A DNA stretch of 63,717 nucleotides, counting the filler, from Trichosphaerium sp. ATCC 40318 (taxonomy: Eukaryota > Protista > Tubulinea), in the NCBI GenBank assembly GCA_038496445.1. It is 4 parts of 4 records of this genome, joined end to end, with 100 filler letters (N's around TTAATTAATTAA, not from the genome) between each part and the next. Parts side by side here need not be neighbours in the genome. Positions count along the whole stretch, not along the records: positions 21,634 to 40,823 come from JALMLS010000221.1; 3 more parts are not named here. One strand, written 5' to 3'. The notes beneath the pieces are model-generated. The model was not told the DNA's origin and searched no databases. It saw only the letters and a program-made list of their open reading frames with translations. The translations under genes and the position numbers were made by a program. The first letter of the stretch is position 1; each line of letters opens with the position of its first letter. Below, one piece after another: positions 4,962 to 40,823 of the stretch.

Positions 4962-7900
4962 TTAATTGATGGCAGCCATAAGAGTATCAGCATCATATCG
5001 CCACCATCCAGGGACAGGTATCAGTGTTATACCTATATTCGATATGATTAATCTATTGCCCTCTATGGCTGTTTGTTTTGTATTACCTTCTTTGGCACAA
5101 GCTTCTGTCTTTTGTGCATAGAATGCGTGGAAATCATATGCTGGTCTCATTTGACGCTCAGATGCAGGTAAATTAAACTCATCCTCTGTAAAACGATATC
5201 GTCAGTTGAGTTTGCTATGATACCAATGTTTTGCTTGCCTTGAAAGTCAAAGGCAATTTTTTTAGTAGGTACATAAAAGTCCAGCTTGTCGTTAAAAACA
5301 AGCGCCTTGATATCATCTGCCAGCTTCAAACATGGATGTGCGAAATCTCTTACAACCTCATCATCTGGAACAAGCGAGGAATAAGCGTTTGAAGGATTCT
5401 AGGACGAAGTACAAGTCAGTTGGGGAACGCTGTTGAACATTGAGGACGCACGTTTTGGTAAGACCAGGGTTGCTATCGAATAACAGCTCGCCTCTGACCT
5501 CCCCTTGTGGGTATACTATACTCATTGCTTGATTAAAATTATCGCGATACCGTGCAACAAGAGAATTTCCTTGATTGGCTGTAACTTGGGATTTTGTGAC
5601 ACGATACCAATCCGAAGGTCTCTCAATGCGAAACATTTTTTCCGAATCTCTTAAATAGAAAATAAATCATTCAACAACAAACATGGAATATGGTGTTTCA
5701 TACCGTATCCACTGCACTACTGTATCGATGTCATACCAAATATCAGATCGCAACGGTTTAAACATCCAGTCTTTCCAGTTGTGGTGCTCGTAAACTTGAT
5801 GTAGGACGTCAATCAAATCGCCGCCACATTGAGTAATTACAGGATCCGCTGTTGAACAATCTCGTAAGTCTTCATAGGATGAATTTCAATACGCGTACCA
5901 TAGGCCATAACATCTTTTTTCTTTACAGTATACCAATCGTCAAGTTGCTCTACACCAACTCTATCACCCACCCAATCAAAGAACTTTTTCAGTTTGGTGA
6001 GATCGCTTGGAATAGATTCATTCCTAAAGCAATCTTTTAGCTAACCCGTAACTACGAAAGCAATGGTGATTGGTCTACCTTGCTTTGAAGTAATCCCATT
6101 GTTGCTCAGGGTAGAATGCCACTAGCAAATCTAACAAATCATTGTACTCGCTAACCAAGGTATTAGTTTGATTACATGTATACAGCCTTAAGTACCTCGC
6201 AAATTTGCCACCCTTCCTGACTATACTCGCTATTGTTACATTGTACCAATCTCCTGGTATATTCTTAACACCCAGATCTTCCAATCTAATTTGCAATTGA
6301 GTAAGTTAACCAGTATTTAAACCGAAATCACCTTTGTTAACTGTTTCTTTTGTGCTCTGAATTCTTCGTCCTTTCGAGATATCTGCGCAAGTTCCTCGTC
6401 TGTAGGACCTGGGACTGATGTCAGCACAAACCCCTCAGCCTGTATACAATGAATGACATACCGAATTTTTTCAAGTCCCATTCGTAGCCATCATACACAT
6501 TCATTAACACTTCACGCAATGAGTTATTGTATAACCTATCGTATAGTAAGCAACGGGATACAATTTTTAAAACCCATACGTTAACAGCTCTCCGCCACCG
6601 TAGTTGGTTAGTGCTGCTGGAAATACGCTGTACCACTCAGACATGCCGCTGAAATTGAGGATCTTGCCTAGCTGATTGGGAGTTAGCTGCAGACTGTTTG
6701 CATAGTGTAGACCTCGTCTAGGAATATTTTCCTATTCGCCTCAATTGCAAAGTAATCCTTCTCACTCAATTTACTTGTGAGACGACGTATATTCCACTTT
6801 GTGCCAGGAAGCAACGCTGAGAACATCTTGGGAATGGAGTTATCGTACTCCCTAACAAACAATACGTAGTCAGCTTAGATGTATGTCACGTGGCTGGAAA
6901 GGGTAGTCCAATTATTCTACGCACTTGAGAAGGCCAATGGCACCCATGTTCTTAATCCTATTTGCATTGAGCCCAGCGTTGTACCAGTCTTCTGGTTCTT
7001 GTTTTATTTCAAGGTCTTCTTTCAGCTAAAAGATGACAAGGTCAAAAAAACTGATCGTGTGTGTGCATAGATCGTACACAAGCAATAAAGTTGTCTTGAT
7101 TGGCTTGAATAGTCCAAAAACCCTTCTGCCGTCTTGCTTCTATACACAAAATGTGAGTATTAAAAACACGTGATAGGTTTCGTAGTATCGTACTAATTTG
7201 CCATAGCCGCCAATTTTTATCTGGATACATTGTCTGTAATAGCTGTGGTACTCCCATTTTAAAACGTCTTGTGGACAATACATCAATAAATAGGTTTTTT
7301 TCAAAATAGTGTCTGGTGTGGTGTACTTTAAGAGATTAGAACCTCCTGCTTTCTTGAGTTGTATTCTCGAAACGTTGTACCAATCATTCAAGTCCTTCAT
7401 CTCAAGGTGCTCGCAAATCTAAGTTTCAGTTAGAACATTAAAACTACCACAAAGATATGTCCATACTCTCTCCAAGAAGGCTTCTTGGTGATCTGTCTTG
7501 TACCAGGACAACCCATCAACTCTACTCTCTAAGACACAAAAAATAAGATTTATCATGGTGAAGAAGGAAGGAACTTGCCTATGAGTTGCATGTCCCATGA
7601 GTGTTCAGGAAATGTGGCTTTGAGGGAATTCAAGAAATTGCCATCATACTTTCTACAAAAACAGACGTGACATGTCAGTAAGGAACAAAGCCTTGTGGTT
7701 ATGAGACGTGCTCAAGTAGTGGCCTGCCACCAAGTTCAACAATCTCGTCTTTTTTGACAGTAAACCATTGTTGCGGTAATTCGTCCAGACTCAATTTTTT
7801 AGCGCACTACAGCGTTTTGTCAGGCGTGTACACGCTATTAATCATGGCGCTACAAAATAATGTCAAACCTCATCTAGAAACACTCTATGATTTGTTTTAT

Positions 7901-8106
7901 CCCAAAAGCTCTTTGGGCGTTCTTTGATAACTACTGAGTTTAATATGACGTAACAAGTCCAAAAGACGTTTTTTTGGCGTTGTACCTTCGTCGTCATCGC
8001 AATAATGGCGGTTTTGACGCTTAGCTGTAATCGCTCGTTTATTTATCCCAACGATTAGTGTTTTACACGCCCTCGATGTAAACGCAGTGCGTAGCCCTTG
8101 CAGCAT
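3672..8106 (-). CDS. Putatively mitochondrion-targeted Trp-rich repeat protein (7 repeats) + PD-(D/E)XK-like nuclease + ATP-dependent DNA ligase, with an in-frame TAA at 4962-4964
   Basis: N-terminus MLQGLRTAFTSRACKTLIVGINKRAITAKRQNRHY|C. Repeats such as LEMKDLNDWYNVSRIQLKKAGGSNLLK...LQTMYPDKNWRLWQI. Nuclease LDFYVPTKKIAFDFQGKQ...GITLIPVPGWW. Ligase motifs EKYDGIR, LDGELW, YHIFDSP, EGLVIR, VLKVK and OB-fold end GKPQYPWLLRER. Confidence 0.8.
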
Positions 8107-21633: not shown

Positions 21634-22184
21634 GCCACCTTCGTCTATCACGCTCATTTCGTATATGGTCTGAACACCTGAAAGCGTTTTAAGGTCTTCA
21701 TCTGTCACTGAATATGATCATGTACGCCTCTAAGTGCTACACCTTCATCTGTCACTTGCCTGTATCTACGATTTATGCTTTGAGGTTATTTATTTGTTCT
21801 GTAAACCACCAAGTCAATGTACTTAACAGCATTCATGACAGGAAAAGCGCAAAAAATGAGGATAACAAACGAGAAACTGCTCCGTCGACAATGTACATAA
21901 ACTGGTACACACTTTAAGAGCATGTCTCATACTTACAACACATACAGTACTTCTTGCGCTACCATGTACATCTAGAACATTTGATATAGGCTGGTAGGAC
22001 ATGCAAGAAAAAACAAGAAAACAAAAAAACCCTTCTAAATGTAAATAGATCAACATAAGTTATCAACTTGAAATAACTTGTTTTTCTTCGCTAACGTGAC
22101 AGCAACTCACCTATTCTCTTTTTGGTCAACGATTTTACTTGCACGTACTTGATAAACACAAAACACTCGTTAAAAACCATAAAA

Positions 22185-23278
22185 TGACTTATCTTGCCTG
22201 GCGTACATCTCATACCTACGTTTGGGGCAAAGCATGTGCGTTAAAACAAGAATCTAATGCCAGTAAAACCAGTTATTAATAAGTTTTATGTTCAGCTAAC
22301 GGAAGATTGGGAATACCTTCACTTGACCCGACTGTATATCCAATACAAGTAGCACCATTGCGTTTAACAACAGAAACAACGTTTAAAAAATGCGGTATGT
22401 AGTTTAAAATGTATCACGTGGCTATGTAGCCAATGTCTTTTTTCTTTTTCTTGCTTACTCGTTTTAGAGCCTTCCCATGAGTATGGTGGTTGTGCAGTTG
22501 ATATTGATAGTTGCGGGTGGGTATGGGGTTCAGTTGTAGATAAGTGCGTAATGCTTTATTGATAAGTAGCTTAAACACGTGGCATAGAGGTAAACCGGCT
22601 AGAATCGAAATTGGCGATGATACAAACAAAGTTAAAAAAGTAGTAATGGGTCACAAGATTTACGCTCTGGTAACTTTTACAGGAAGTGAGTACACTGAAA
22701 ACGCATTTACCATATTGTATAATTAACACGTATATAGATGCTTATTATTTCCATCAAAAAGAATGGAAAAGCGTTGGAGAGTACGTTGTAAAACACGTTG
22801 GTTTTTAATTGATAGGAATATTTTAGGAATCATGAAAAGTACAAAGGCGAAGTATTTACCGATTGCTGTTGCGCTTCATCTTGCACTATGTTCTTAACAG
22901 AAACAAATAAAGTCATACTGATTAGTAAATGGGCACATCCAGAGGATATTGTAAAGGAAATGCCACAGGATGACCCTGTTATACACCTAGGGCAAACTTA
23001 TGATTATCCCTTGATGGTAACTAAGAACGGTGTGTTACATGTGAACGTAGGTGAAGAACCGCACACTGACAAGTTTGTGACACAAGTATGCCACCGATTA
23101 AAGAAACATGCCCTTGTATATTAAAGAAATACATCTATAGGCATCAGGTTGTGAAGATCAATATGGTTTTGTTACCAAAGATCATAACGTATATCTCATT
23201 GGAAGAAATGGAATGAGGCAGGTATTGTGCCTTATGGAAAAATTAAAACAAACTCCAAACTATGCCAGGAATGGGTAG
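22185..23278 (+). CDS. RCC1/BLIP-II-like beta-propeller protein (divergent)
   Basis: NGRLGIP, CAVDIDSCGWVWG, CCASSCTMFLTETNKVILI and ASGCEDQYGFVTKDHNVYLIG resemble RCC1 blades. Confidence 0.5.
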
Positions 23279-25621
23279 AACAATTTTCCGTATCTGTATC
23301 TTTTAATGTTTGGATGTTATGTTTTACTTTTTTTTTCCAGTGTGGCGTTGTAGGAGGTGATGTAGTTGGAGGTAATGTTGTAGGAGGTAATGTAGTTGGC
23401 GGTGACGTTGTTGGCAGTGTTGGAGGTGCTGTAGTTGGTGGTGGTGGTTCTATTGAAAATATATATGCGTAAGTACCTGTAGTCAAAGCCTGTGCGGGAC
23501 AAACAAACCTAGATGCAGAGTAAACATTTCAAATGTCAAAATAAATCAAACTCACGTGAATGATGTACTATTGAAGCTTATATTAGATGCAGTGACAGTG
23601 AAATTAGACGATTGAAATGTAAAACCTACACAGAATTTAGAACTAACACCGTTTTAAGGAAAGAAAGCTCAGTTTGTTTGTTGAGCTAACAATGACTCCT
23701 GTATTAAAATGATTCGCTGCCAGTTAATTGGTAACCATTGGGTAAGAAAATACAGCTTAAAATAATTTTAAAATAGTTGTTGGGGCAGCATCGCTTTTGA
23801 GACATTTCGAGTTGGGAATGTTTGTGAAAAACAATATGAAACAATTTCTTTGACTGTCGGTGCTTTTTCTAAGCACAGTATAAACAAATAGAAAAAATTG
23901 TTCTGGAAATATAAGTATAGCGTCATGGATACATGATAATGAGACCGATTGAAATACAAGATGGTTCTGAGGTGAGTAAAAACGTTCTCAAATATTCTTA
24001 AAATTCCAATAAATATCTAAAAATTAAAATTCGATACGAAACTGTCTCAACGGCATGCCATGCTGTGTCCCGTTTTTTCGGGAATTGTAGTACTAATAAT
24101 GTGTCCCGTGTTTTTTGGTACGTGGACTAAAAATAGTTACCTCCTATAACTGGGTCGTCAAAAGTGCATGTAAGTATGTGAATCCCACCTAAGGATATAC
24201 TTACTGAAGCAATGTCCACTGATAAGGTAAACAATGTCGTGTCAATGTTGATATTCCAGAAGTTATTGAAGCCAAATTTTGTTATATATTCAGTAGCAGT
24301 ATCAGATACTATAAAGTTTGGGTTGTTTGGTTCATTTGACATGGAAGCAAAGTCTGTATTCCCGAAAAAGTATGTACAGCTTCCTCCATCTCCTACGCCT
24401 ACGACAAAGATTAATTGTTAGTTTTAAACGTAGTTTGTGGGTTTTTTAGTTTTAAAACATCTCAGGTCTAAAAAAATATACCAGTTTTTTTGGTATATAC
24501 CACTTTTATACCACTTTTTTATACCAGTTTTTTATGGTATATACCAAAAAAAGTGGTATATTTTGACCGAAATATACCAAAAAAAGTGGTATATTGACCA
24601 AATATACCAACAATATACCAAAAAAAACAGGTATAAAAACAGAAAATATACCACTTTTTTTCACCAGAAAAAAAAAAATATACCACTTTTTTATACCACT
24701 TTTTTAGGTATATACCACTTATATACAACTTTTTTATACCAGTTTTTCATGGTATATACCACTCTTATATACCACTTTATGCTTACTTATGGTACACCTG
24801 CAATTCCAGAAAATACACTTTATTTAATACACAGTTTGTGAGTTACAAGTTTTGGACAATGTCCACTACAGTTACATTACTATGGGCGTCTGGAAAATTC
24901 GTCCATCTCCATGAGCTTGCTGTACCTACTGTAAAAACATGCTGCGCACCTAATGAAAGTGGTCCCACCTGAATCCATCAATTACTAAGGCCTACGGAGG
25001 TCGGTTAATGTATATCAAACGAAAATAAAATAACACTTTGTCTGGTACCCACGAACGTCTGTATAATACCTGCAATATAGTTTCCTTAATGTTGGTACTG
25101 GAATCAGGTCCTGCGGTTTGAATGAGCTTGGTTTGGTTAGATTCTATGATATACTAAGGTCCCTACGCACCGTTCAATGTATGACGTCTATGATCGTTCA
25201 ACAAGAAAACCCATTACCAAAAAGCTCCTTAATGACCTTCTTGAAGCATACCATAAAAGTGGTATATACCAATAAAAAGGTGGTATATACCACATACCAT
25301 AAAAAAGTGGTATATACCACCTTATATACCATTTTTAGAAGGTCTCATTATGTGAATAAAAAGTGGTATATACCACTTCCATATACCACTTTTTTATTCA
25401 CTTAATTTCTAAAAAAAGTGGTATTTCAAAATGGTATATACCAGTTCATATACCATTTTGTTGAAAAAAGAGGTATATACCATAAAAAAACTGGTATATA
25501 CCACTTTAATTTTTAGACCTGCTTTAGTAGCGTGCGTCGTACGCCACGTACTTATTGATACTGTTCTTACTACGAATAAGCATAATACCACAGTTGTTAA
25601 TATAAAAGATGATTTACTCAT
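23232..25621 (-). CDS. Secreted protein with Pro/Thr-rich (PPTT) mucin-like tract, interrupted by a TIR element
   Basis: Signal peptide MSKSSFILTTVVLCLFVVRTVS, exon at ~24140-24415, and PPPTTAPPTLPTTSPPTTLPPTTLPPTTSPPTTP at ~23340-23450. Confidence 0.45.
24463..25521. mobile_element. Non-autonomous TIR (foldback-like) element with TATACCA/TGGTATA subterminal repeat arms
   Basis: Termini CAGGTCTAAAAA and TTTTTAGACCTG, flanked by CT on both sides (possible 2-bp TSD). Repeat arms at 24475-24790 and 25248-25505. Confidence 0.7.
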
Positions 25622-27290
25622 GTTAGTGCTTGCGCTGGTTTATTTACGATGTTATTCCAAAATTAGTTACGCTATTTGATTTGTTGTAGAAAACGAGGGA
25701 GAATTTCTTCACTAATTGGTTTGACTAGTACACAACAGGAATTTTCGAATATTACAACAAAAACCGTCTAACTAATTCAACAAAACAATAAACGAGCTAT
25801 GTTGAAGACACAAAGGCCCAAGAAGTAAACAAGTACAGTTCTTTTAGAGCGCTGGTTACTAGTAACAGATTCTTATCCAAGCGAAGGATTGCAATCCAAA
25901 AAAACACTGTATGTTGGTAGCCGTAGGGAAGAACATATTTGGTTTTTTTTGATTCTTGGTTATGAGTTTGCTGTAATGTACAGTGCGGTCATTAAATCAC
26001 TGAATACAACAGGTAATGTCTAATACAGGGTGTAAAAACAGTTGTCATAGTCATTGAGTGTTGGCGATAACCGCACAAAGAAAACACGAGTAAAAAGGCA
26101 TTTAGTCCTTATGGGCTAAAAAAAAAAGTAAAAAGCCAAGAAAGGTTCATACTTAATGCGACATTCCAAAGGATCACAAACATTCTCTTACCTCTATACT
26201 GTAAAACACTTGTCTTTATAGTGTATGTGGCAGTGTTAATAGTAGCTAGAGTGGTAAAAGAAGGCACTGCGGTATATGCTGAAACTCTAAGATTTCCATT
26301 TGAAGCATTTCATATCTCTGTGGTACAATCTGTTAGTATCGAGTACCATGTTTAATGATAATCTCAACAAAACTATATTTTGTTTGTTTCATAATCCGAG
26401 AAGAAATTGTTCTGAGTATTAGGCTTAGGTTTGGTAGCTCTACGCTTGGCGAACGTGTTGGCATGCTTTCCTGTTTGTTTGTGACGTTTTGGTTGTTTTT
26501 CTGTTATTTTCACTCTGTGCGCAAGAGAGACGTGTATTTCGGTAAGAACAGAGGTAATGGGTGCGTTACGTAGCTTGGTTGAGGCTCTAGTATTGTGTTT
26601 GCGCTGCCTGCTGTTATCCCTTACAACAGACGCACAAGGGGAAGGAACAAACTCAGACATATTTATGTATGGGTATACGAGGCGTTACAGATTTATTAGA
26701 GGAAGAGTACAATTGGGAATTATTGTACTTCATCTTGAGGTAAGGCAATGTCACTGCGTCTTGCTTTCTTGTTGGATCCTTCTTCTTTGTCTTCGCGTTT
26801 ACGTTTGGCTTCAGCGGAGAGGTTGGTGTCTTTTGGTTGAGGAGGTTGTTCTGGCGCTGGTTTCTCTTCTTTTTCTTTTTCAGTGTTCTTTTCAGGTTCG
26901 TTTTCGTTTTCTTCTTCTTGTTCTTCGTCAACTTCCATGTGGTCGTAATCAGCCCAGAGAGGATTCTTGACGTCAACCTTGTCTTCGATAACAAGGAGTC
27001 TACGAGCATGGCATCCTTGTTCAGCAGCTGTTTCGTTTGCGCTTTGTAGAAGTTAGTGGAAGGGTAGTTGAGTTGTGTTTTGGAGAGGGTTTTTTCGTAC
27101 AAGTTTTGGACTTGTTTCATCAAGCCAGTAAGGAGGTTGGTAACACGAGCAAGTTTGTCCAGTTTCTTCTGGATGGCGTTCCTGTACTTGTCGTCAAGCT
27201 TCTTCTCATCGGTGTCGCGGTGTCGGTTGTTGAAGTAATCCCATTCCTTGTCGTACGGTACAGGACAGTTCTTGTAAAGGTTGCCTACAT

Positions 27291-28322
27291 CAGTAGTAAA
27301 ATAGAAATGGGAATTTTTAAGTAATCCACCCTGTTTTCCTATGGGAAAAGTAAACGGAAAAACTCTTCCTTAATTCCCATTGAATTTATATGAAATTCTG
27401 TAAGTATTACTCATAGAATTCTTAGAATATTACTTTTGGAATTGCGTATGTATTTTATATAGAATTCTCTATGTATTCTTTATAGCATTTCTTAATGTAT
27501 TTTTTGTAGATTTCAATAAAAAATACTTTATAAATTACACAAAATATTATTTAATACTTTGGTTCAGATTTAATGCAAAGTCATTTTATTTATTGATCAT
27601 TACAAAATACAAACATCCTAAATAATACGTACAAGTTAAATACATCGTGTTTTCATAAATGAAAGAAGTAATTTGATCACATTTGGTTTTGAGAGCCTGA
27701 ACAATAATTAATGCATTTGTAAATGCTAAATTAAGAACGCGTAGGGTTTTTTGATAAATTAAGTGGAAATAAGCTTTAAAAACAACCTACTTGGAGTTAA
27801 TGCTTTAAATACATTCTTTAATGGTGTAATAAGGCTGTTGCAATGCTTTAATCATCCTAAAACAGATAAGTAAGAGATATTTATGTTTAAGTGATTTTCC
27901 AAACCACCTAAAACGTGTTCTCTGTTACTTTTTGGATTAACGCACTTTAACCTGTACCATTGGTTTTTTCACCTTTAATAATAGCATGTGGATATTGTTC
28001 GCTAGAAAAACCTATGTACCTAAGGTGTTGATGGTTTTTTGCAAATATAAAACTAAACCCTAACCCTAACTTAATTTGTACTTTCATAAACCTCAACCCT
28101 AGCCCTAACCCTAACCCTAACTAAATTAGTACATTATTTGGTGGATTTTGTACAATAATTCTGAAAATTCCGTATTTAAGGGAATATTATGGTAATCCTA
28201 TCAAAAATCCTGCCATAAAAAAAAATAAAAATAAGAATTCTTCACAAATTACCTTAAAAATCCCTAAAACAAAGGAATTTAGTGGGATTTATATCCAAAA
28301 TCCCGTTTTCATTTTACCACTG
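27291..28322. mobile_element. Non-autonomous TIR DNA transposon with 2-bp AT TSD and internal telomere-like repeats
   Basis: Imperfect TIRs CAGTAGTAAAATAGAAATGGGA and CAGTGGTAAAATGAAAACGGGA; AT duplicated at both ends; partial second copy at 59558-59771. Confidence 0.85.
28055..28122. repeat. Interstitial (CCCTAA)n telomere-like repeats inside the transposon
   Basis: AAACCCTAACCCTAAC and AACCCTAGCCCTAACCCTAACCCTAAC. Confidence 0.8.
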
Positions 28323-28863
28323 ATACATCGTGCTTGGTGTGAGGAGTTCATTCTTCATTTCTTCCTCAGTGTCGAAGGAGACGATGGCGAACCCTCTGCA
28401 TACGTCGTTGAAGTACGAGCAGGCTGGAACGATTTGTTGCTTCTTGATTCTGTCGTTGAAGGCTTCGTAGAGGTTGTCGATGGTTCTTCTTATCGAAATG
28501 CGTGGGAGGTTTCCAATCGCCAAGGTTCTGTTTCCAAGAGGGTTGGTGGTGATGACGAGGTTGATGACGCAATCTGCAACACCAAGCGGACCAGTGTTTT
28601 TGTAGGCTTGGTTCCTGCCAATGTGATCCACAAAAACCATTTTACCGTAGGAGTTCTTGATCCATGAGGCAGTGATACATCTTGCCGTGCATTCGTGGGG
28701 GAGGAGGTGGTTGGAGTGTTGTTCTTCGACGATCTCTTCGGCGGTGAGGATTGGTACGTTTTGTCCTTGTTTGTAGCCACCGTTGCGTTGTATTCTGACA
28801 ATAGCTGGGGAGACATCTGAGACTGCGAAGGCTTCAGCGTTTTCTTCGCTTCGGTAGACTAGC

Positions 28864-29793
28864 CAGGGCTGAAACTAAACAAGGCTTTGCCTTAAATATG
28901 AAGGCATTTTTTTAAAATCAGGCATTGATGGCAAAAATCAGGCATGCAAAAATGGCAATGCCTGATTTTGCAAAGGCAATGGCAGAAAAGGCAAAAATCA
29001 GGCATTGAAATAAGGCTTTTTTGGGCAATGCCTTAATTGTTGCAATGCCTTGTTTTTTTTTAGGCAATGCCTGCCCTAGTTTTTTTATGCATTGCCAGCC
29101 TTAAATTTATAGGCACCAATTAGGCATTGGTTGTGTACACATTGTACATTAAGGATACATTGGTTTAAGGTAAGTCTCCACCACACCAACACTTCCTAAA
29201 CATTTTTTTTCATTTACTACTGACGTTTTATATAGACGCCGTCACCACGCGCTTAGTATTTTATGGATTCTAACGAAACCGCCGCCATTCGAACCGCAGC
29301 ACCCAAATCCACCTACAACAGGAGTATAGGTACTTTAAACCATTTTTCCAGTCCGCGAAAATTATACCAATAATTTGTTAATTTTTTTTTTTAACTAAAG
29401 GTTTTTTTTCACATGGAGGACATTGAAGTTTTTTGTGTTTTGTGTACTGTACTTTAATAAATGAATCACTATTGTATGCCTATATAAAGCCTTGTTTTAT
29501 GAGTATATGGTGCCTGGGTTATGCCCAAAAATTGAGGGCAAAAATGCCTTATTGTTGCACTAAAAATGAGGCATTATTGGACCAACAATGCAGGCTATTT
29601 TAAGGCTAATTAGTGAACCAGTTGCTTGCTATTTGGCCCAAATATGAGGCTCCAAAGCCCAAAATTACAAGGCAATGCCTCATATTTGCTCATTTTTTTT
29701 GGCAAAAACAAGGCAATTTGATGAAAAATAAGGCTGTATTTGGTGGCAAAAAAATGGCTTTTGTAAAAAAAGCCTTATTTAGTTTCAGCCCTG
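28864..29793. mobile_element. Non-autonomous TIR DNA transposon, 4-bp TSD (TAGC), AGGCA/TGCCT subterminal repeats
   Basis: TIR CAGGGCTGAAACTAAA(C/T)AAGGCTTT at both ends; TAGC at 28860-28863 and 29794-29797. Confidence 0.9.
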
Positions 29794-30815
29794 TAGCTTG
29801 GCGAGGGTTTGAGCGTCTTCGAGATTGTGGAGGACAGCGTAGGTCATGCCAATGTACTGGATGCCGCCGGTGAATCTTACAATTTTGATGTCACCTCTGA
29901 TCGAATTGATGAAGACTTGTACTTCACATGGATCGTCCTTGTCATACATTACTACGAGAAGGGGGTAAAAGGAGCCTTTCTGCACAAATTCTTTGGTGTA
30001 GCGGTAAGTTCGAGGAGGTACGTGCGTGTCCTGGATCTTTTTCCTAAGGACTTGCGAGCGGATGACTGGGAGGTCTGTGTTGTTGGTCGTGGAGGTGATG
30101 ATCTCAACAGAGTCTTCATCATCGCTGTCTAGGCCTGGAAGGTCGAGTTGTCTTGTTGTCATGTTCGATACTTGATACAATTTGTGTGTATTGACTTTAC
30201 ATGTTTGGTATGTTGCGAGGTATTTATTCGGAGGGTTTGTGGAGGGGATGTACTGGTGGTTTACGTTTATCACGTGTTTGTAAGACTGTTTTAGAGATTT
30301 TATTTTACATTTTCGGAAAATTTGTTTATTTGGTTTTTTGTACACTTCATTGTCTTTCCGGGGTTCTTCTGAGGTGTTGTTTCCTGTTTTATTTTCTCGA
30401 GGTAAATTTTTAGTAAGGTACATAAAAAAGTAGGTAAATTTATCGGTTAAAGTTTTTTGCTTGTTTGGTTTTGCGCGGTGAGGTTGTGTAAGGATTTCTG
30501 GACGGTTCGAGGGGTTTACGTAGACGTTATGGGGTGTTACGGGGTGTTTGATATCAGAACATTCTTTAACTCTCTTTACGCTGTTTCTACCGACTGTGTG
30601 ACGTACTTGTGGGTCTTTGTAGTGTACGGGGTCTTTCGACTGAGGTTGCAGTGTTGTAGCGCTTGGAGAGCTAATGATTGTTCTTTTTGGTATCAGTGTC
30701 AGGAAGAGGTGCCTTCCGGAAAGAAAAAGAAGTTTTTTTTCTGATCTCAACGCTCTGTACACCAATTAAGCCTTTGGCAATTAAGCAAGAAGAAAACAAG
30801 TCTCAAAGTGCCAAC

Positions 30816-33271
30816 ATGGCCGCCAAGACGCAGTATGATTCTGTATCTCTCACATCAGACACTTTTGACGTAGATGAAACTGAAGCACAAACATCTGTAA
30901 GAACGTTTGCTTAAAAGTGACTGCTTTTAATTTAATTACGTAGGTTATTGTTCCTAAACCCGGTTTTTGGACAGGAAAGAAGAAATTAGTAATCATACTC
31001 ATTGTAACCATTTTAATTATTCTTGGTGGAGTTTTCGCCGTTATTTTCCTTACAGACGAAGGACCAAGTACATTAACACTGCCTTTACAAAACGATTTAC
31101 CTTTTATTTGTTTAGGACAACATCGCAATGTCATCTTTTTAGTACCAGATGGCTATGGTCCAGCGTATACTACACTTACAGTACATATGAACGGTGATAA
31201 ACCACTAGAGATGGATTCATACCTTGTGGGCACTTCACGAACTCGCTCAGCTGATAGGTACACAGCACAAAACGTAACAAGAAAAAATCTCCAAGTGTCA
31301 CCATTTTCATGAAGTTATTTACTACACCTTTTCTTTTTACGTTTCGTGTAATCTCACTTTTTTAGTCCTGTGACTGATTCAGCTGCTGGCGCAACATCTT
31401 GGGCGTGTGGACTACGTACAAACAATCACTATCTAGCTGCGACACCAGAGAATACATCTTGTGGTACGACGTGACGTTAATATAAGATCTAATATTTTAC
31501 ACAAAAATTTCTGATTCCCGTTTTCTTATTAATAAACACAAAAAGGGACTCTTATGGAAGCTGCTATGAATCAGAAGAATATGAAAGCTGGTTTCGTTGT
31601 AACGAGCGAAGTAACACATGCAACACCAGCAGCTTTTACTTCACACTCTATAAGCAGGTAAAACAGAACGACACTTATATTAATTGACTTCCGTATCTCA
31701 TTTTTTTCCTTTCTACAGATACTGGAAAGAGTTCATTGCTGGTCAACAGATTAAGAGTGGACTAGAAGTGATGTTTGGTGGTGGACGTACTGTATTCACA
31801 CAGGATAATAATACACTATGGAAAGAGGCTGAGTCTAACGGGCTTAATATTATTACAACTGCTGCAGAGCTTAGTGGTAAAAATCTTGGGATTTTTTCAT
31901 TGTCAACTATTTTACTGACGCTGAGTTCAAGGGGATGTTAAGCTGCCTGTACTCGGGTTATTTGCAGATAAACACTTGGCATTTAGTCTTGATAGGTACA
32001 TTAATTTTTTCGAACGCGTTTATTGATTGAATGCTTCAGGGAAGTCGATGATGTTGAGCCAAGTCTTGTTCAAATGACAAAAAAAGCACTTGATATTTTA
32101 AACAAAGGTATTTTCTCTCGTTCTCTTGCTCTACTTCCCTTCTAATGACATCAATGTATTATTAGATAATAAAGATGGGTTCTTTTTACTTGTTGAAGGT
32201 AGTCGTATTGATCACTGTGGTCACATAAACGATCCATGTACGATTTACTACTATGCTTAATTTTTTACTTATTGTACCTAGCATGTGCTTACCATGAAGT
32301 AAATGCTTTTGATGAGGCGTTTAAAGCAGTAATTGACTTTGCTAAAGAAGATAAAAACACTTTAGTAGTATCTGTAGCTGATCATGAGACAGGTAACGCC
32401 AAATCTCCGCTTTTCTTTTCTTTTTTTGTTCGAAATACCAATAATTACTTATACCTCTTTAGGTGGTTTGGCTCTTGGAGTAGGTGAATATAATTATGGT
32501 TTAGACTTCCTTTCACAAGTTAATCACACTTGTGAATGGTTTGTAGCGCAATTGGACGTGCGTAGAGAGGGATTTTCTCCTTTTTTTTTCTTACCTTTTT
32601 ATTGTATTTTGTTCTCATCGGTTTTTTTAGCTTGCTGCGCTTAACTCTACAGAGAATTTACAAAAGCTTGAAGAAGACATTGGAACATACACCCCAATAG
32701 ATACACTCACACCTGAAGAGGTATCTCTAATACAGAATGGACTTGCTACTTCACGTACGAGAAAAAGAGAAAAAAAAAACCTTCACAAAAAAAATCAATC
32801 CATCCTTATTAATATGTTTTTCTAATAGCGGTTGCTACTGAAGAAGCACTTGCAGCTATATTTTCAGCAAGAGGTGAAATAGGCTGGACATCACATGTAC
32901 ATACTGTACGATACAAGCAAAAAAAAAAAACAAATTATTTCTTGAAATATTAAAAAACTTGTATTACAGGGTGTAGATGTCAATGTATACGCTTATGGAC
33001 CTGATAGTGATAAATTCGCTGGTCAGCATAAGAATTATGATTTGGGTGTAATTCTTGCAAAAATATTAGGGTTTGATTATGATAAAGCTACACAGGATGT
33101 CAAGTACGTCTTTTTGACGTTGCTCTTTTATTATTATTTTTTTTTGTAGTATTCTTATGAATTATTTTTCTTACTTCTTTCTCTTTTTATAGATCGTTTG
33201 ATCCAACGAATAATTCAAGTATGGATAGTACTAAACGCGATGTTGGTTATCATTCCAATAACATTCTTTGA
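30816..33271 (+). CDS. Alkaline phosphatase (PhoA/Pho8 family), type II membrane-anchored
   Basis: N-terminal TM, then NVIFLVPDGYG, VTDSAAGATSWACG (catalytic Ser), HATPAAF, FFLLVEGSRIDHCGH, VVSVADHETGG and HTGVDV-like motif. Confidence 0.93.
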
Positions 33272-33577
33272 TAATGGGAACTACACCAAAAAAAGTCTTG
33301 ACTTTTTTTTTTGGCATTTTGGAGGGGATATCTTTTGCTGTTTACCCAGTTGTATGATTATAAAGTATTACAGTACCCTGATTTTTTGTTTGTTGGAATA
33401 TTGTATGTATGTTGCACTTTATACCAAGGACTTACCACTTCCTATCACCCAGCACAAAGAGTCAGAAATAAATTTTTGTTACTCCGAAAAATTAACTTGT
33501 TACTCACTCAAACACCCATAGCAGTGATTTTGAGGGCTTTTTTGGAATAGGCGTTGAGTGTCATAGAAACATTCACC

Positions 33578-35357
33578 TATTCAGTAGCATTGCTGTAAAT
33601 CTAGTCAACTGCCTAGAAGAAGGTAAGGGAGTAGCCTATTTACTAAGACGGCATACTTTTGTTGTGAAGTTTTACCACTCTGTTTAAAACGATTCCAATC
33701 CCAACCATACCCATCGTGTAAAAGTGATAATGCTCTAGGCCAATATTTGCGTAACCTTATTCCTCCCACAGCCTGTAAATGCAGAAGTGACACGTGATAC
33801 CTGCAAATAACGGTAAGATTTTTTGTTGAAAAAACAGCTTAGTGTTCCTTTACCATTCCGTTGGTCTGGTGATGTGTAAAGCCTCTTTGGCCTGTTCTAA
33901 GAAACTCTTTTGGTTTTCTTCACACCAATGACGTTGTGCCCCCTTCCAGTCGTATGAAGGATACAGAGCTTTCAAAGCGTTGAAAGCTCCAAAGTGTCTA
34001 AAACGGTGTGAAACAAACAGTTAAATGTTCTGGTATTAAAACTATGTAAAGTTTCTATACGGCTTACCTTTTTGCTATAGGACCGTTTTCGCGTACTATT
34101 TTGCGTAAATTACCACGTGTGTACCATCCATCTAGTGTCTTTATTTGATATTTTTCTCCGATATCATCAAGAGCCCGTCTTTGGTTTCTAGGATCATCCC
34201 AGTAGTATTTAGGCGCTTGGCTATATAAACAAAACGCATTACCCTAAATGTTTACACTAAATGCCTTACGTGAAACACTTCGTATCCCAATTGTACCGTG
34301 GATATAATGTCTCAAGACACTTTGAAAGGGAGCAACTGTAAACATTCCTTTACAAAAATCCTGTAAGCGTGAAGTTTCTTTTTTCGAACATACAATAAGC
34401 GCGTCGTATTCCTCTCAGAGACGTCTTCGACTCGAATTTTATACCAGTCATCCATTGTCTTTACATCAAGCCTCTCTCCTGAGGTATTCATGACATGTTT
34501 ATGAATTTCCACAGAGCTCCAATAGCCAGGAGCACGGTAACTAATTTAAAACTTACAGGTTTTTGCATCACAAATCACAACGTACTTGAGCCTTTGAGCA
34601 TCCCAAGGATGATTCGGGAAGGAGGAGGATAGTGCATCTAGAAGATTACAGCATTTCCTTGTTTTGTTGTCGTACCTGAGCGGGAATTACTAGACTAAGG
34701 AGGTACAAATACGTACAAAAAACTTTTAGCACCGCTCTTCATAGCATCTTTGAACGATACCCTGTACCAATCATCAAGTATTTTACAATTTAATCTCCTG
34801 CCAACCATATTAACGGCATCCTTTCTATTATCTCTATTATCCCAATGACCACGTGGAGCCTGTCTAAAACAACCTTATCAATAAACTTGCTTTGTTCTGT
34901 GTTTTTCCAAAACCACCTGAAACGTTGCTTGTCCCACGTGTATTTATTGTAAACTGAACAAATGCAACTTGAGATAGAACCGTTATAAACCCTAATAAAG
35001 TATAAAATGGTAGGCCACCTTAACAACAAGGAGAAAGAAGTGTACGTGTTTAACAATGCTCTGGCTGAAAATGATGACAGTGTTTTTTTCCCTACAGCAT
35101 ACCACTCGTCTAATTGCTTGATTTTTAGGCGTTCACCGACGTTATCAAGCTCTTTTCGCTGATTTAAGATATGGTGTTTTGATTTGCTTCTAACGCTCCA
35201 TTACTTGTTAAATTATTCAAAAAGCGCGGTAGGTGAATGATACTAACCTTTTCGCAACCACACGCATAATTCAGCGGTGAGTGTATTAGGTTTACACTGA
35301 GTAGTGCCTAACGTACTTTGCGTAGTAGTTTACAACGAGGCATACTTGTGTTGACAT
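33578..35357 (-). CDS. Trp-rich repeat protein (~5 repeats), no catalytic domain; paralogue of 3672-8106
   Basis: LKIKQLDEWYAV; PRGHWDNRDNR...LNCKILDDWYRV; PGYWSSVEIH...VKTMDDWYKI; PKYYWDDPRNQRRALDDIGEKYQIKTLDGWY. Ends GYGWDWNRFKQS. Termini approximate. Confidence 0.75.
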
Positions 35358-35396
35358 TTGGTTTATTCTAGAATTGTCTATCATCCTCAAATCACC

Positions 35397-37917
35397 ATGA
35401 TTCGCATCACGTTAGTTTGTGCTGTTCTACTTTTAGCTGTACAGGCACACAGAGTCTCATTTGAAACTGGTGCTAGAGAAAGCGAGCATTGGGAACGCGG
35501 ACGTACGTTTATATCACTAAGCAATCCATAACCAGTGTAACAGAACGTGGAAAGCCAACCGAAACGTTGGAGTTTGTTATTGCTCTGAAACAACAGAACG
35601 TACAACAACTAGAGGCCATGTTCTGGGATGTCAGCAACCCTAAATCGTCAAATTACGCTAAATACCTTACTTTGGACGAGGTTCACGCTATGCTTGCCCC
35701 AAAACCTGAGGCTGTAAGCACAGTAACTACCTGGTACATATTTTGATACTTGAAAGTGAAAACCCAAAACTTGCTTTTATGAGATGATTTTTGTTCAAAA
35801 CCAATTGTAGCGCTAAAATTTTAGCGCTGCTAACTACACAAAACAATTAGCATTAACGATCGTTTCATTTTACAGAACGCTAACAGCTTTTTTATAGGAT
35901 CAAAAACGCCGCTAATCTCGTTTCTCTTTCGCTTGAAGGTGAATACATTAAAGTGGAAATGTCTCTAGAATCTGCAGAAAGTGTATTTCAAGTAAAGTTC
36001 CATGAGTATACACACAAACGTACTCAAAAGCGTATCATAAGAGCCGTAGATACATACTCTCTACCATCAGAAGTAGCAGGTACTTACTAAAATACCATAA
36101 ACGCCAAAAAGCGTTATTATAATTTTTATCACTAAAAACGACATTTCAGAGCATGTTGATTTGGTCTTTGGTATCAAGCACTACCCAGGTATTAAGCCAC
36201 CAACACAAAAGGCTTCAAAAAGAAGCACAGAAGCATTATACGTCACACCTACTGTTATTCGTCAGCAATATAAGATTGGTGATGCTGCTGGTAAAGCTGC
36301 TAATAATTCCCAAAACGTTGCTCAATTTATTGGCCAATATTATTCCCCTGGTACGTTGTTTGCCTTTGATTCCTATTCTTCTCCATTCTGACTATTGGAA
36401 AGGTGATTTGTCTGAGTTCTTTAGCCTATTCTGGCCTAAATCTACAGGTAACACACCAAAAGTTATCGGCCCAAACAAGTCACCTGCAGGTGTTGAGGTA
36501 AACATTAGAACGGAAAAAAACCGGTTAGGCAAAAAACTCATTGAGTTCTTTGGCTTTTTTGGTTTCCACCATTGTTGTGTGAAGTTTTAATTTGTGTGTA
36601 GGCAAGTCTAGATATTCAATACATCATGAGCGTTGGCCAGGGTGTACCTACAGTATTCTGGTCTAATGAGGTACAACAAAAATTGCTTTTTTTTTTTCCA
36701 AAAAGCTAAAACATTAAAATTAGGGCAGCAACGCTAACCAAGAACCTTTCCTTACTTGGTTGTTGGCTATGGATAAGACAGCAGATGCGCCATTAGTAAA
36801 TTCAGTAAGGTAAGTATAATTTTCGCACTGTTAGTGAAGTGCTAGCGGGTTTTTGTTTTTTCTCTACATTTCTTTTTTTTAATTTTTACAGTTATGGTGA
36901 TACAGAGTCTTCGATCACTTCTCAATACGCCGACCGTGTTGAAGTAGAGTTCAAGAAACAAGGTGTCAGAGGTCTTTCAATCTTATTCGCTTCTGGAGAT
37001 TCTGGAGGTAATTTTTTTTTCTGTCGACTTGCGGACAAGGACAAGTCACGTTTTATTTCTCTTTTACTTATCTTTTGCTTTAGTCGGTGGTTCTACTATT
37101 GGATGCTCCAAGTTTGCTCCTGATTGGCCAGCTACTTCTCCTTCCATCACTGCTGTTGGTGGTAGTACACTTGGTCTTTTCTCAGTAAGAAACTTTTTCT
37201 CTCTTTCTTTGCCCTTACGGTTTTTTTGTTCTAGAGTGTTGAAACTGCAGCTGGGTTATCAAGCGGTGGATTCTCAAACTACTTTGGCCAACCTCCATAT
37301 CAATCCAAACAAGTACAGAGCTACCTAAGGTTAGTACTTTCACAACTTTTCGAGCAGTTTTCCCTTTAAATCGATTGTTATCTCACTAATTCATCTAGCG
37401 GATCAGGCAGTCTCCCAGCAAGCCACTACTATAATGCAACAGGCCGTGGATTCCCAGATGTCGCTGCGCTTGCTGAAGGCTTCGTCATTGTTTACGATCG
37501 TATCACAATGCCAGGCACGTGTTTTGTCCCTTCTGAACACACCATGTGGCTTATACTTGTCTTTAGAGGTCGCTGGAACCAGTTGTGCTTCACCTACATT
37601 CGCTGGTGTTATGTCATTGCTTAATGATTTGCGTCTTCAAGCTGGAAAACCATCCCTTGGTTTCTTGAACCCTATTCTCTACCAACTCGCTGAAGATCAC
37701 CCTGATGCTTTCTTTGATGTTACTTCAGGTAGCAACCCAGGTTGTGGTACTGAAGGATTTGAAGCAAGAAAAGGGTACGACAGAGTAAAATTTTCTTCTT
37801 TTAAAATCCAGAACTTTGTCTCTTTCGTTGATGCTTACTTTTCTTAGTTGGGATCCAGTTACTGGTCTTGGTACTCCTGTCTATGAAGCTATGGCTAAAT
37901 ACGTTCTTTCCTTGTAA
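35397..37917 (+). CDS. Sedolisin/tripeptidyl-peptidase 1-like S53 peptidase
   Basis: Signal peptide, prodomain DVSNPKSSNYAKYLT, EASLDIQY, LFASGDSG, GRGFPDVAA, GTSCASP and WDPVTGLG. Confidence 0.95.
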
Positions 37918-37994
37918 GACTTTTGTAAGAGTAAAGATCCAACAGCTTCAATACCAATTTGAGTTTACGCTTCGCACCTTGTCACTTGAGTCAT

Positions 37995-40823
37995 ATGTTT
38001 GGTTATGCTTCTTTGTACAAAATAGCCTATTTGTTCCGATTTTTTGGCTTAACAAAGTCAAAGTGTGCTGTCTGTCAGCGAAACCGTTACGTGGTGAGTG
38101 CAGTTGTGGTATAGGTCCACGTTATGGCTATAGGTGGTTTACGTTTTGAAATTCATGGCGAGCAGTGCCATTAGACAGCAATTGAGGAATACTACGCGTC
38201 AGAAGACATTATTTGCCGAAAAATCAGCGAGGGAGAGAGAATTGCTCTTAAGAGCTGGAAATGAACCTAAATCGCTTGTTATAAAGGTCAACAAATATAA
38301 GGACATAATATAATGCCATTAACAGATGAGTAGGTTGAAAAAACTGTAAATCTACGTTTTCAAGATCAATGGTACGATGTACGGTGGCAAGATATAATAT
38401 CATGTGGCGGAAAGCAACTTATAAGGTAAACAACGACCGCACAAGGTTATTTGCCATCTCAACTTATAATTTTTTGTTCTAAAGCGAATATGGCCATTCT
38501 CTAGCTCGTTTATTAGGTGGAGTATATCCTAGTGTTGCCTGGAAGCCGTGGTGCTTTGGTACACTTTTTTTTTTATTTCACGTGCAATGACATGTGCGCA
38601 TACTTAGTTTTTTTTCTGTTTTACAGAGGCGTTATTACCTGGCTATTTTGACGATATAAAGACAAGACACTATGTTGCAGATAAGGTACACAATCTTGAT
38701 ATTTCGTATAATTACAGTGGAGGAGCAATTAAAGAATTGCAAGTCAGTTGGCGTTTTTGTTTTTTGATGCCACTGGTTATTGTATATGTTACTCTTTTTA
38801 CGTTGTGATTGACGTATTTTTTGTAAGATTGCTAGAGAACTTTGTGTTAAGACAGCTTCTGATTGGTATAAACAACACCAAGCCGGTATTGAAAAAGTTG
38901 GAGGAACAAAGCTTCTGGCGTGAGTAGTATCATTACTTGAAGATTACTATTTTCGTTTGACATGTTTTTCTTTAGGTATTACGGTGGGAATATGCCAAAA
39001 ATGCTATCAGATATTTATGACTACCCATGGATTCCTTTCCGATTTGGTTAGTATTTAATCACTACTCTACAACGTATTGACAATATATCAAGAACACCTC
39101 AAAGTAGCAAAGGATCATTGGCGAGATAGTCAAAATGTTATAGATTTCATTATAGCAGTGAGTTACCTTTATATTTGTTAGTCTTGTATCAACACATAGA
39201 GTCATACTTTCTAGGCTGAGAGAGAATATAATATTAAAGAAATAAAGGATTGGTATGAAATAAAATCAGAGGCTTTTGCAAGAGCAGGTGGCAGAGGAGT
39301 AATAACGTAAGTTTTTTATGATTACTAAAATATTTTTTCTCACGTGCGTTCATAGTAATTTTTCTAATTCTATGAAATGCGTTTTATCTCATGTATATCC
39401 AGACTTTTTGTGGGTACCTTGGAAATTCAGTACGTAATAACAACTTAACGACCTTTTTTGTTATGAACTAGAAATAGTTTTTTATAAAACAGATTGCTTT
39501 TGTTGATGCTGACCATTGACGATTTCTAGATCGTGTTGGAAAATATTTTTGGCATATATCAGATCACAGGTTAATGTATATAATATATGTAAGTTAAGCT
39601 TGTTATGTGACACTCTTGCAGCAAAGAATCTTCAATTGAGCTTTTCTTGTTTCGAACACCTTTTTTTTTCTTCAAATTTCCCGTGTTTTGTTAATCTCTT
39701 CATTGCAGGTTGAAGACAAACTTGGAATAACTAAACTTGATGATTGGTATAATATTGGATTCAATGTACTCTTTAGTTATGGCGCAGCAGGACTTCTTGA
39801 GTACGACTCTTTTTCTTTTTTTCAATTTTTCAGCTTTGTTGGCTATGTTCACCGACTCTATAGCAATTTTGGATTTTCTATCTGTAAAATGTTAGCTTCT
39901 GTTTATCCAGAACACCCATGGAATTCTGATAGATTCCGAACAAAACCTGGTACGAACTAATCTTTTGTTAAAATTTTTTGCTTTCTACTTTCTTGCTACT
40001 TGTTCTTTTGTTCCTGGTTATCATTCTTTTTCAATAATAGATCGTCCTAGATTATGTTAGAACAAAACCGCGTGGGTACTGGACAAACACTGAAAATGTT
40101 AAAAGATTCCTGTTACATGCGAAGAAAGAATTAAACATTAAATCACAAAAAGAATGGGAACGTGTTTCTGTTGATAATCTAAAAGCTCTTGGTGGTAGTA
40201 GTATTATTTCTTATTGGCCTGCTTGTTTGACTGTACTATATCCTGGTAAAAAAGAGAAGCAAACAACAATTCTTGAAAATAGATCCGAAGGTGCTGAAAA
40301 GCGTGCCAACCAAAGGTACTTTTTTCTGGCTATACCTTTTCGAAAAAATCGACTGAGTGTTACTTTCGTAACAATCCTTATCACGTTTTTCATTGTATTC
40401 TATTTTGTTCGTTTTGTTTTCTCGTTTTATTCTTAAACCCACTTACACAAAAATCACAAGGTGGTTGCTTAGTTGTATTAAAAAACTGTTTCCTTCATAC
40501 GATGTATTTGAAGAGTATGCTCCAGGCCTTGACCATGTTACTTCTGCTAAAGTTACAATGGATATATTCATACCTCAAATAAAGATTGCTTTTGAATATC
40601 AAGGAGAGCAGCACTATGGAGATATACCTCAGCGATTTGGACCAGCAACCATACAAATAGCATGTGACGCGGAGAAAGTATTAAAATGCCGAAGTCATGG
40701 TAATCTATGAAACGACTTTATAAATTTGTTTTCCTTTGTTTGTGAACAATAGGGATAGTACTTAATCTCTTTAGGAATAACACTTATTCCTGTACCATAT
40801 TGGTGGGTACTTGGCGATGTAGA
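37995..40823 (+). CDS. Trp-rich repeat protein (~5 repeats) + intact PD-(D/E)XK-like nuclease; truncated at contig end
   Basis: Basic N-terminus; repeats such as LGITKLDDWYNI...LASVYPEHPWNSDRF; nuclease MDIFIPQIKIAFEYQGEQHYG...DAEKVLKCRSHGITLIPVPYWW. Confidence 0.8.

Follow-up and report, generated by a model that had tools for sequence, protein, structure and literature searches.

What does a tandem array of ~75-residue repeats do in an amoeba, and on which substrate does it act, when one copy ends in a nuclease and its neighbor does not? This question is raised by two divergent genes, here called gene A and gene B, in Trichosphaerium sp. ATCC 40318 (GCA_038496445.1). Both lie in a flagged region (33578-40823) of the piece 21634-40823 (JALMLS010000221.1), itself one of four parts of the 63,717-nt window, i.e., the whole stretch of DNA analyzed, along which all positions are counted. 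An initial annotation had proposed an expanded repeat family with exchangeable C-terminal modules, analogous to the P, E and DYW classes of PPR proteins. We find the two genes to belong to a large, unnamed and uncharacterized family that is mainly protist. As to their role, we consider it about an even call that A and B represent a variable targeting array plus a cassette acting on nucleic acid, with DNA as the likeliest substrate.

Two spliced repeat genes flank a protease gene

The piece 21634-40823 is eukaryotic nuclear DNA with a GC content of ~37%. Motif and hidden Markov model (HMM) scans placed two repeat genes in it, gene A on the minus strand (33.6-35.2 kb) and gene B on the plus strand (38.3-40.3 kb), with a sedolisin gene between them; no further repeat copy was found elsewhere in 21634-40823 by these scans or by an independent unit HMM. 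The flagged region lacks a long open reading frame (ORF) because both genes are split by many short introns, and searches with A and B were run on single exon pieces or on homologs. A Pfam scan of the raw exon pieces gave no match. The units of both genes follow the motif P.GYW..NQR.F...L.I..DWY.V...GG..LL..Y..S...L...YPEH.W..W.F, and an HMM built solely from foreign homologs re-found every repeat exon of A and B (E = 1e-4 to 1e-17). The repeat is thus not a chance pattern, and divergent paralogs, as claimed earlier, are present at both places; the third paralog of that claim (3672-8106) lies outside this piece, and the check covered two of the three. The first halves of the window's units share ~19-33% identity.

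Each gene contains five units (the fifth of gene A being degenerate), at the lower end of the five to seven proposed initially. One or two introns fall inside the units, save for the fifth of gene B, which is a single exon, and the introns joining the pieces of both genes are frame-preserving, of GT..AG type and 41-145 nt long. RNA-derived contigs from four public runs were aligned to the region; as spliced contigs match introns of each gene, both A and B are transcribed and spliced.

Gene B (38155-40823, plus strand) comprises five repeats and a nuclease and is cut by the piece edge. Its proposed exons, connected by frame-preserving GT..AG introns, are 38155-38277, 38334-38425, 38485-38558, 38627-38685, 38828-38919, 38976-39046, 39093-39157, 39215-39306, 39356-39429, 39530-39588, 39709-39800, 39864-39949, 40051-40315, 40461-40699 and 40775-40806. 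RNA contigs confirmed the intron 38686-38827 (runs X1 and X2), while the junction 40315/40461, spanning a 145-nt intron, restores the ..KRANQ/RWLLSCIKKLFP.. helix of the homologs (slash, junction), with the conserved ..QRWLL....LFP... Repeat 1 (38334-38558, its first helix encoded in exon 1; unit HMM E = 1.2e-6 and 1.7e-5) is followed by repeat 2 (38627-39046, with two introns, one of them RNA-supported; E = 7e-7 and 9.6e-5), repeat 3 (39093-39429; E = 3.8e-7 and 2.8e-6), repeat 4 (39530-39949; E = 3.9e-16) and repeat 5 (40051-40253, without the last Trp; E = 2.8e-15 over unit positions 6-75). The protein begins MASSAIRQQLRNTTRQK and is clearly basic at its N-terminus. The initial annotation had ascribed such a terminus to both genes, which holds for B; for A the start is uncertain, with an ATG at 35267 in the present model as opposed to 35357 in the earlier note.

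Gene A (33605-35267, minus strand) is the repeat-only paralog, its proposed exons being 35267-35248 (uncertain), 35195-35046, 34991-34917, 34863-34717, 34675-34586, 34540-34394, 34347-34270, 34220-34068, 33997-33854 and 33800-33605, with frame-preserving GT..AG introns of 41-70 nt. Two of these introns, 33998-34067 and 34221-34269, are joints in RNA-derived contigs (run X2). Repeat 1 (34917-35195) contains one intron and scores E = 7.6e-17 against the unit HMM for the whole piece and 2.9e-11 for the best stretch. Repeat 2 (34586-34863; E = 2.3e-13 for the N part, 4.6e-4 for the C part), repeat 3 (34270-34540; E = 4.6e-13 and 1.3e-5) and repeat 4 (33925-34220; E = 1.4e-12), whose internal intron is confirmed by RNA contigs, precede the degenerate repeat 5 (33686-33924), in which the N part matches unit positions 11-38 (E = 8e-4) and the C part finds an alignment solely among the C parts of the window itself. 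The array carries a net charge of +28.

Downstream of the array, all that gene A retains of the nuclease domain is a stub of its first helix (33605-33685, ..TSQQKYAVLVNRLLPY..), without a nuclease core, followed by the stop codon (33607-33605); this tail matches nuclease HMM positions 7-41 weakly (E = 0.13). The nuclease HMM found no nuclease exon downstream of gene A on the piece, and one RNA-derived contig runs unbroken from 33515 to 33794, so that the stop is retained in the transcript. The proposal that one paralog lacks an enzyme domain was thus correct, with the nuance of the first-helix stub; gene A is expressed, would have lost the nuclease while keeping its array, and is probably a binding-only factor. 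In the region 3′ of its stop (33402-33561), run X2 departs from the window by four missing bases at 33402, several substitutions, and the replacement of ~65 nt at 33449-33515 by eight letters, a pattern suggestive of variation between strains or alleles in the 3′ untranslated region.

The repeat unit is a basic five-helix module

Family members show a spacing peak of 75 residues between repeats, corresponding to a module period of ~75 amino acids, and their consensus unit reads vPkGYWksieNqReFlDelakkLgIksleDWYkVtkkdiiknGGsGLLkkYnnSLskLLksiYPEHpWkpWkF. Across 1619 aligned units, conservation is concentrated in a hydrophobic and aromatic core and in a polar N-Q-R motif, and the most variable positions line one face of helix 3 (43, 44, 47 and 48) and helix 4 (52, 53, 56 and 57). 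The average unit is basic, at a net charge of +2.2. AlphaFold2 (AF2) modeling of a single unit from 137 aligned units predicted five helices with a predicted local distance difference test score (pLDDT) of 88.6. For a whole homolog, the model reached a pLDDT of 89 with confident unit-unit junctions and a predicted template-modeling score (pTM) of 0.50.

Comparisons with solved structures gave little. By sequence, the repeat profile had only chance-level matches in the PDB (best E = 0.056), and Foldseek of the single unit against the PDB and BFVD returned nothing better than E = 3. VIA-align of the unit against 48,161 chains peaked at Z = 4.5 (TetR-type helix-turn-helix (HTH), Slx4 CCD and LOTUS), within the stated noise of the tool; an HTH assignment was accordingly dropped.

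A shape search of the ESM Atlas, in contrast to these PDB comparisons, paired the unit model with clusters labeled DUF4046 at a template-modeling (TM) score by query of 0.66-0.73 (root-mean-square deviation (rmsd) 1.8-3.2 over 73-90 residues), the models being predicted on both sides. These clusters, in which 99-100% of members carry PF13255, come from Discosea, Tubulinea, Bacillota and Nucleocytoviricota. At the sequence level, PF13255 scored 12.5-13.4 bits on family members (E = 0.12-0.23) compared with a gathering score of 22.8, and precomputed matches were likewise labeled faint; two of the 137 single units matched, at E = 0.035. These faint matches span model positions 13-87 of 90. As the sequence scores fall below the gathering threshold, we call the unit DUF4046-like by fold and not a Pfam member. 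This uncharacterized domain was the sole family resemblance found, and no match to a well-characterized family with a function outside nucleic acids emerged.

Gene B encodes a predicted Vsr-type endonuclease

Following its repeats, gene B encodes a PD-(D/E)XK nuclease of Vsr/EDxHD type at 40461-40806, split over the exons 40461-40699 and 40775-40806 (nuclease HMM E = 1.2e-24 and 7.7e-5). It displays the motifs ..MDIFIP.., ..AFEYQGEQHY.., ..CDAEK.. and ..GITLIPVPYWW, the last of which ends at 40806. Next, at 40807, comes a likely splice donor (GTACTT). The WW codons lie 17 nt from the end of the piece, an edge that probably falls inside an intron of gene B, and the last ~20-40 residues of the nuclease domain would lie beyond it.

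The nuclease HMM was built from homologs, and in the alignment of 56 nuclease domains (A4) the positions E41, G44, H47, D67 and K70 were invariant and D30 nearly so; gene B has all of them. I-Bth0305I and Vsr cut DNA with a Mg ion bound by Asp and with His as the base (PMC3239194), and the Asp, His and second Asp of the family were matched to D51, H69 and D97 of Vsr by motif order (PMC3239194), as distinct from residue-level superposition. With metal-binding and general-base residues intact, the gene B product is a predicted endonuclease, in agreement with the canonical nuclease that had been noted in the edge-cut paralog (HMM E = 1e-24, conserved residues present). In Foldseek, the AF2 model of the homolog P0154 aligned to the catalytic domain of I-Bth0305I (3r3p_A) with a probability of 1.00 (TMt 0.59, rmsd 3.0, 84 columns) and to DNA-bound Vsr (1cw0_A) with a probability of 0.99; the modeled alpha/beta nuclease core can be superposed on both.

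By sequence, neither the nuclease exon nor the nuclease profile matched the PDB. Pfam reported DUF2726 only, below threshold and in 16 of the 56 nuclease domains, a family placed by Pfam in the PD-(D/E)XK clan. There was no match to RAP (PF08373), FAST_1 or FAST_2 in these 56 domains (E<=0.1) or in the whole proteins scanned. The domain does match PHROG "homing endonuclease" families, with E-values down to 3e-15, and for the nuclease exon of gene B itself E = 1e-4. Moreover, the motif pair EYQGxQH[YF] / P[YF]WW[DN] recurs at no fewer than 451 viral contig loci in IMG/VR, in ORFs of 80-643 amino acids, and repeats were joined to it in none of the best 80 of these at least 451 loci (L004-L083). 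This suggests that the eukaryotic nuclease cassette shares ancestry with free-standing endonucleases of phages or giant viruses, and a selfish homing-endonuclease origin of the domain is plausible. A viral-gene reading of the repeat array was rejected, as the best 80 viral loci have the nuclease without repeats.

A large protist family with exchangeable C-terminal cassettes

The nine N-terminal half-units of the window were combined into a profile, which in a scan of 1.84 billion representative proteins matched 3653 of them at E<=1e-3, 1505 at E<=1e-10 and 170 at E<=1e-30. The anticipated large family is therefore real, with at least 12 distinct Trinity genes in the amoebozoan Cavostelium apophysatum. 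Further members derive from Echinamoeba exundans, Physarum polycephalum, Heterolobosea sp. BB2, an MMETSP transcriptome and eukaryotic metagenome contigs; the one bacterial member, from Candidatus Vecturithrix granuli, is a lone gene with an uninformative neighborhood (locus L003). Members carry 3-25 units and, where named, are called "hypothetical protein" or, once (in a JGI record), "very-short-patch-repair endonuclease". Domain-length alignments of A and B units to foreign members are ~25-40% identical and the window proteins ~30% identical to any fetched member; BLAST segments of higher identity (up to 67%) span merely 12-36 residues. In the literature, searches on RAP, helical repeats, Vsr and amoebae in combination turned up no account of these proteins.

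Among 253 family proteins fetched, a nuclease domain was present in 178, and many of the other 75 look like fragments. The nuclease-bearing relatives mostly stop there (167 of 178 have no further C-terminal domain of at least 150 residues), and 11 continue. Nine of the 178 add a shared LigE-like ATP-dependent DNA ligase module, which reaches the threshold of Pfam DNA_ligase_A_M (PF01068) in three of the nine and matches the solved minimal ATP-dependent DNA ligases 6gdr and 4d05 (E = 5e-25). In P0203 from Cavostelium, the palm and fingers of a Pol X polymerase follow the nuclease (PF14792, 88.5 bits; PF10391, 55 bits), and in P0220, from a JGI metagenome, a pterin-4a-carbinolamine dehydratase/DCoH domain. 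Judging from these sequences, the C-terminal modules are interchangeable: the three classes claimed at the outset (repeats only, plus nuclease, plus nuclease and ligase) all occur among the relatives, and classes with nuclease and Pol X or nuclease and DCoH join them. The expectation that a ligase follows at the cut edge of gene B, on the other hand, finds no support, given the proportions above.

A different order was seen in P0208, a Physarum polycephalum transcript in which nuclease (3-152) and ligase (153-438) precede six repeats. Either the architecture differs here, or two adjacent family genes were merged in the transcript model.

Candidate functions of the array and its cassette

In the reading to which we give even weight, the tandem array of ~75-residue basic five-helix modules, remotely DUF4046-like, would be the targeting part, and the C-terminal cassette would act on nucleic acid. 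By default the cassette would be a Vsr/EDxHD-type PD-(D/E)XK endonuclease, as predicted for gene B, with a putative LigE-like ATP-dependent DNA ligase or Pol X polymerase after it in some relatives, and the array would position a nick, fill or seal activity at particular DNA sites. DNA is favored over RNA as the substrate because the nuclease is most closely related to DNA enzymes and is fused, in some relatives, to a DNA ligase or a DNA polymerase. Many members would probably act in the mitochondrion: the basic, acid-poor N-terminus typical of mitochondrial presequences occurs in 56% of the 59 leader-bearing members, and also in gene B. Nucleic-acid binding by the array, the preference for DNA, the organellar location and site specificity are each what we infer from these features.

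Several points weigh against this reading. As the unit has no significant PDB neighbor, nucleic-acid binding by the array is deduced indirectly; the pTM of 0.50 means that the model does not establish the overall array geometry; and no paper on DUF4046 (PF13255, ~90 positions) was found in the literature search. The mitochondrial call is a composition heuristic and not the output of a predictor, and an organelle is not required for the family, given its bacterial member. Ligase and Pol X cassettes together account for ~4% of the fetched members. A whole-model Foldseek search with P0154 pointed weakly (E = 0.01-0.4) to Toxoplasma mitoribosomal proteins and the FASTKD4 FAST-RAP module, and FASTK/RAP proteins bind RNA (PMC5737537). 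Finally, all family members are known here from sequences and predicted models.

In line with the PPR analogy of the initial annotation, the proteins could instead be organellar RNA-binding factors, analogous to PPR, OPR, HPR or FASTK proteins, in which the array would read RNA and a RAP-like Vsr domain would cut or hold transcripts. We regard this as doubtful, if deserving of some weight. Helical repeats followed by a C-terminal Vsr-like domain are indeed the architecture of FASTK/RAP proteins (PMC5737537, PMC8190603). The best whole-model Foldseek rows were Toxoplasma mitoribosome proteins (E = 0.013) and the FASTKD4 FAST-RAP structure 9gek (E = 0.42), but with TM scores below 0.2, and while many N-termini are presequence-like, the unit is a 75-residue domain and not a helical hairpin. 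Neither the 56 nuclease domains nor the whole proteins match RAP, FAST or PPR in Pfam, the closest sequence relatives of the nuclease are DNA homing endonucleases of phages, and the known fusions are to a LigE-like DNA ligase and to Pol X. The distribution of the family could be taken to favor RNA, as it includes Physarum (P0208), whose mitochondrial RNA is heavily edited, and Heterolobosea sp. BB2 (P0015, P0059 and P0097). In BB2, too, mitochondrial RNA is heavily edited, with ~500 insertional edits that most likely arise co-transcriptionally (PMC5421314) and therefore need no cutting or ligation. Because of this, and because the family extends far beyond these lineages, we treat the overlap as coincidence for the present, and any causal tie between the family and insertional editing in BB2 or Physarum as speculation.

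The phage affinity of the nuclease equally invites the view that these are selfish or recently domesticated genes of homing-endonuclease type, whose modules take the role of the phage NUMOD DNA-binding motifs and have expanded in protist nuclear genomes. The viral loci with the motif pair (at least 451) and the PHROG matches speak for it, as do the high copy number within one species, the isolated copy in a bacterium, and the fact that one Atlas cluster sharing the unit fold is 43% Nucleocytoviricota. Yet A and B are ordinary nuclear genes, rich in introns, that adjoin a protease gene of housekeeping type and have neither flanking repeats nor an intron or intein host; repeats are absent from the best 80 of the viral loci; and the paralogs are old (the window's first-half units share ~19-33% identity, and ~25-40% with foreign members), which makes this account distinctly unlikely in our judgment. 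A further possibility appears very improbable, namely that the array serves as a scaffold for protein-protein contacts or as a regulatory domain, has no part in nucleic-acid recognition, and sits next to a non-specific nuclease. It would accommodate the persistence and expression of gene A without an enzyme domain and the fact that no DNA- or RNA-binding fold matched the unit significantly, but the units are basic, consistently fused to nucleic-acid enzymes, and variable in number (3-25), as in sequence-reading arrays.

If the array does target DNA or RNA, a rigid array might read a short stretch per module through the variable face of helices 3 and 4 (positions 43, 44, 47, 48, 52, 53, 56 and 57), giving a new natural recognition code that is programmable and tied to enzymes for cutting, filling and sealing, with a possible use on the mitochondrial genomes of amoebozoans and heteroloboseans. 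We consider this bold extension unlikely; a residue code is hinted at by the variability of the helix face at positions 43, 44, 47 and 48.

Neighboring features of the locus

The gene between A and B encodes a sedolisin (S53 protease, pro-kumamolisin type), identified via its Pro-kumamolisin activation domain (E = 6e-19). It occupies 35383-37957 on the plus strand, is covered by identical spliced contigs from all four runs, has its poly(A) end at 37957, and contains at least 13 joints (13 listed and nine more in the stretch). The 5′ end of its mRNA at 35383 lies only ~30-115 nt from the start candidates of gene A on the opposite strand (35357 or 35267), which suggests a very short bidirectional promoter. 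Twelve of the listed joints are GT..AG, whereas the joint 37512-37565 has non-canonical AG..TT ends in all four runs, perhaps through an offset in the alignment ("both 2") or because the intron is of a rare type. Within the piece, the longest ORF (29785-30765, minus strand; 326 amino acids) starts with TTG and has a low-complexity basic translation without a Pfam match; a genuine coding frame on this strand is improbable.

Comparison with known systems

Arrays of nucleic-acid-binding modules fused to enzymes, such as PPR, PUF, TALE and FASTK/RAP proteins, have explained organelle gene expression and provided engineering tools. The present family comprises thousands of proteins with no name or literature and a confidently predicted new small fold without a clear PDB neighbor, and its combination of a Vsr-type endonuclease, a minimal DNA ligase and Pol X looks like a kit for site-directed nicking, filling and sealing of DNA. 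Should the array be sequence-specific, it would constitute a new recognition scaffold and possibly a handle on the maintenance or processing of amoebal organellar DNA. Should it not be, the annotation would still be useful, as these genes are not to be filed as PPR-like or RAP proteins.

The unit resembles DUF4046 in its fold and in a faint, nearly full-length alignment, and differs in that its sequence stays below the Pfam threshold. The nuclease shares with I-Bth0305I and Vsr its fold and the conserved Asp, His and Asp plus an extra Glu (PMC3239194); its own core motif is E-Y-Q-G-x-Q-H, with the ending PYWW, and the Zn site of Vsr was not noted, though without detailed examination. Relative to EDxHD homing endonucleases, the N-terminal targeting part consists of 3-25 copies of a 75-residue module rather than two NUMOD/HTH motifs, and A and B are nuclear, intron-rich genes located outside introns and inteins.

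With the P, E and DYW classes of PPR proteins, the family has in common that it is multigenic, with variable tandem modules, alternative catalytic C-termini and basic N-termini. The analogy drawn initially holds for architecture only: the unit is a 75-residue five-helix domain instead of a 35-residue hairpin, the catalytic parts are nuclease, ligase and polymerase instead of a deaminase, with enzyme partners that favor DNA over RNA, and no PPR family appeared in any Pfam scan, whether of exon pieces, whole proteins or single units. FASTK/RAP, OPR-RAP and HPR-RAP proteins also place a small Vsr-like PD-(D/E)XK domain after helical repeats, and probable organellar presequences are another shared trait. 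The family stands apart from FASTK/RAP by its different repeat unit, by the lack of a Pfam RAP or FAST match, and by its extra DNA ligase or Pol X cassettes, which are not known from RAP proteins. Its architecture is thus best described as a variant of the known kind in which a repeat array is followed by a Vsr-like nuclease.

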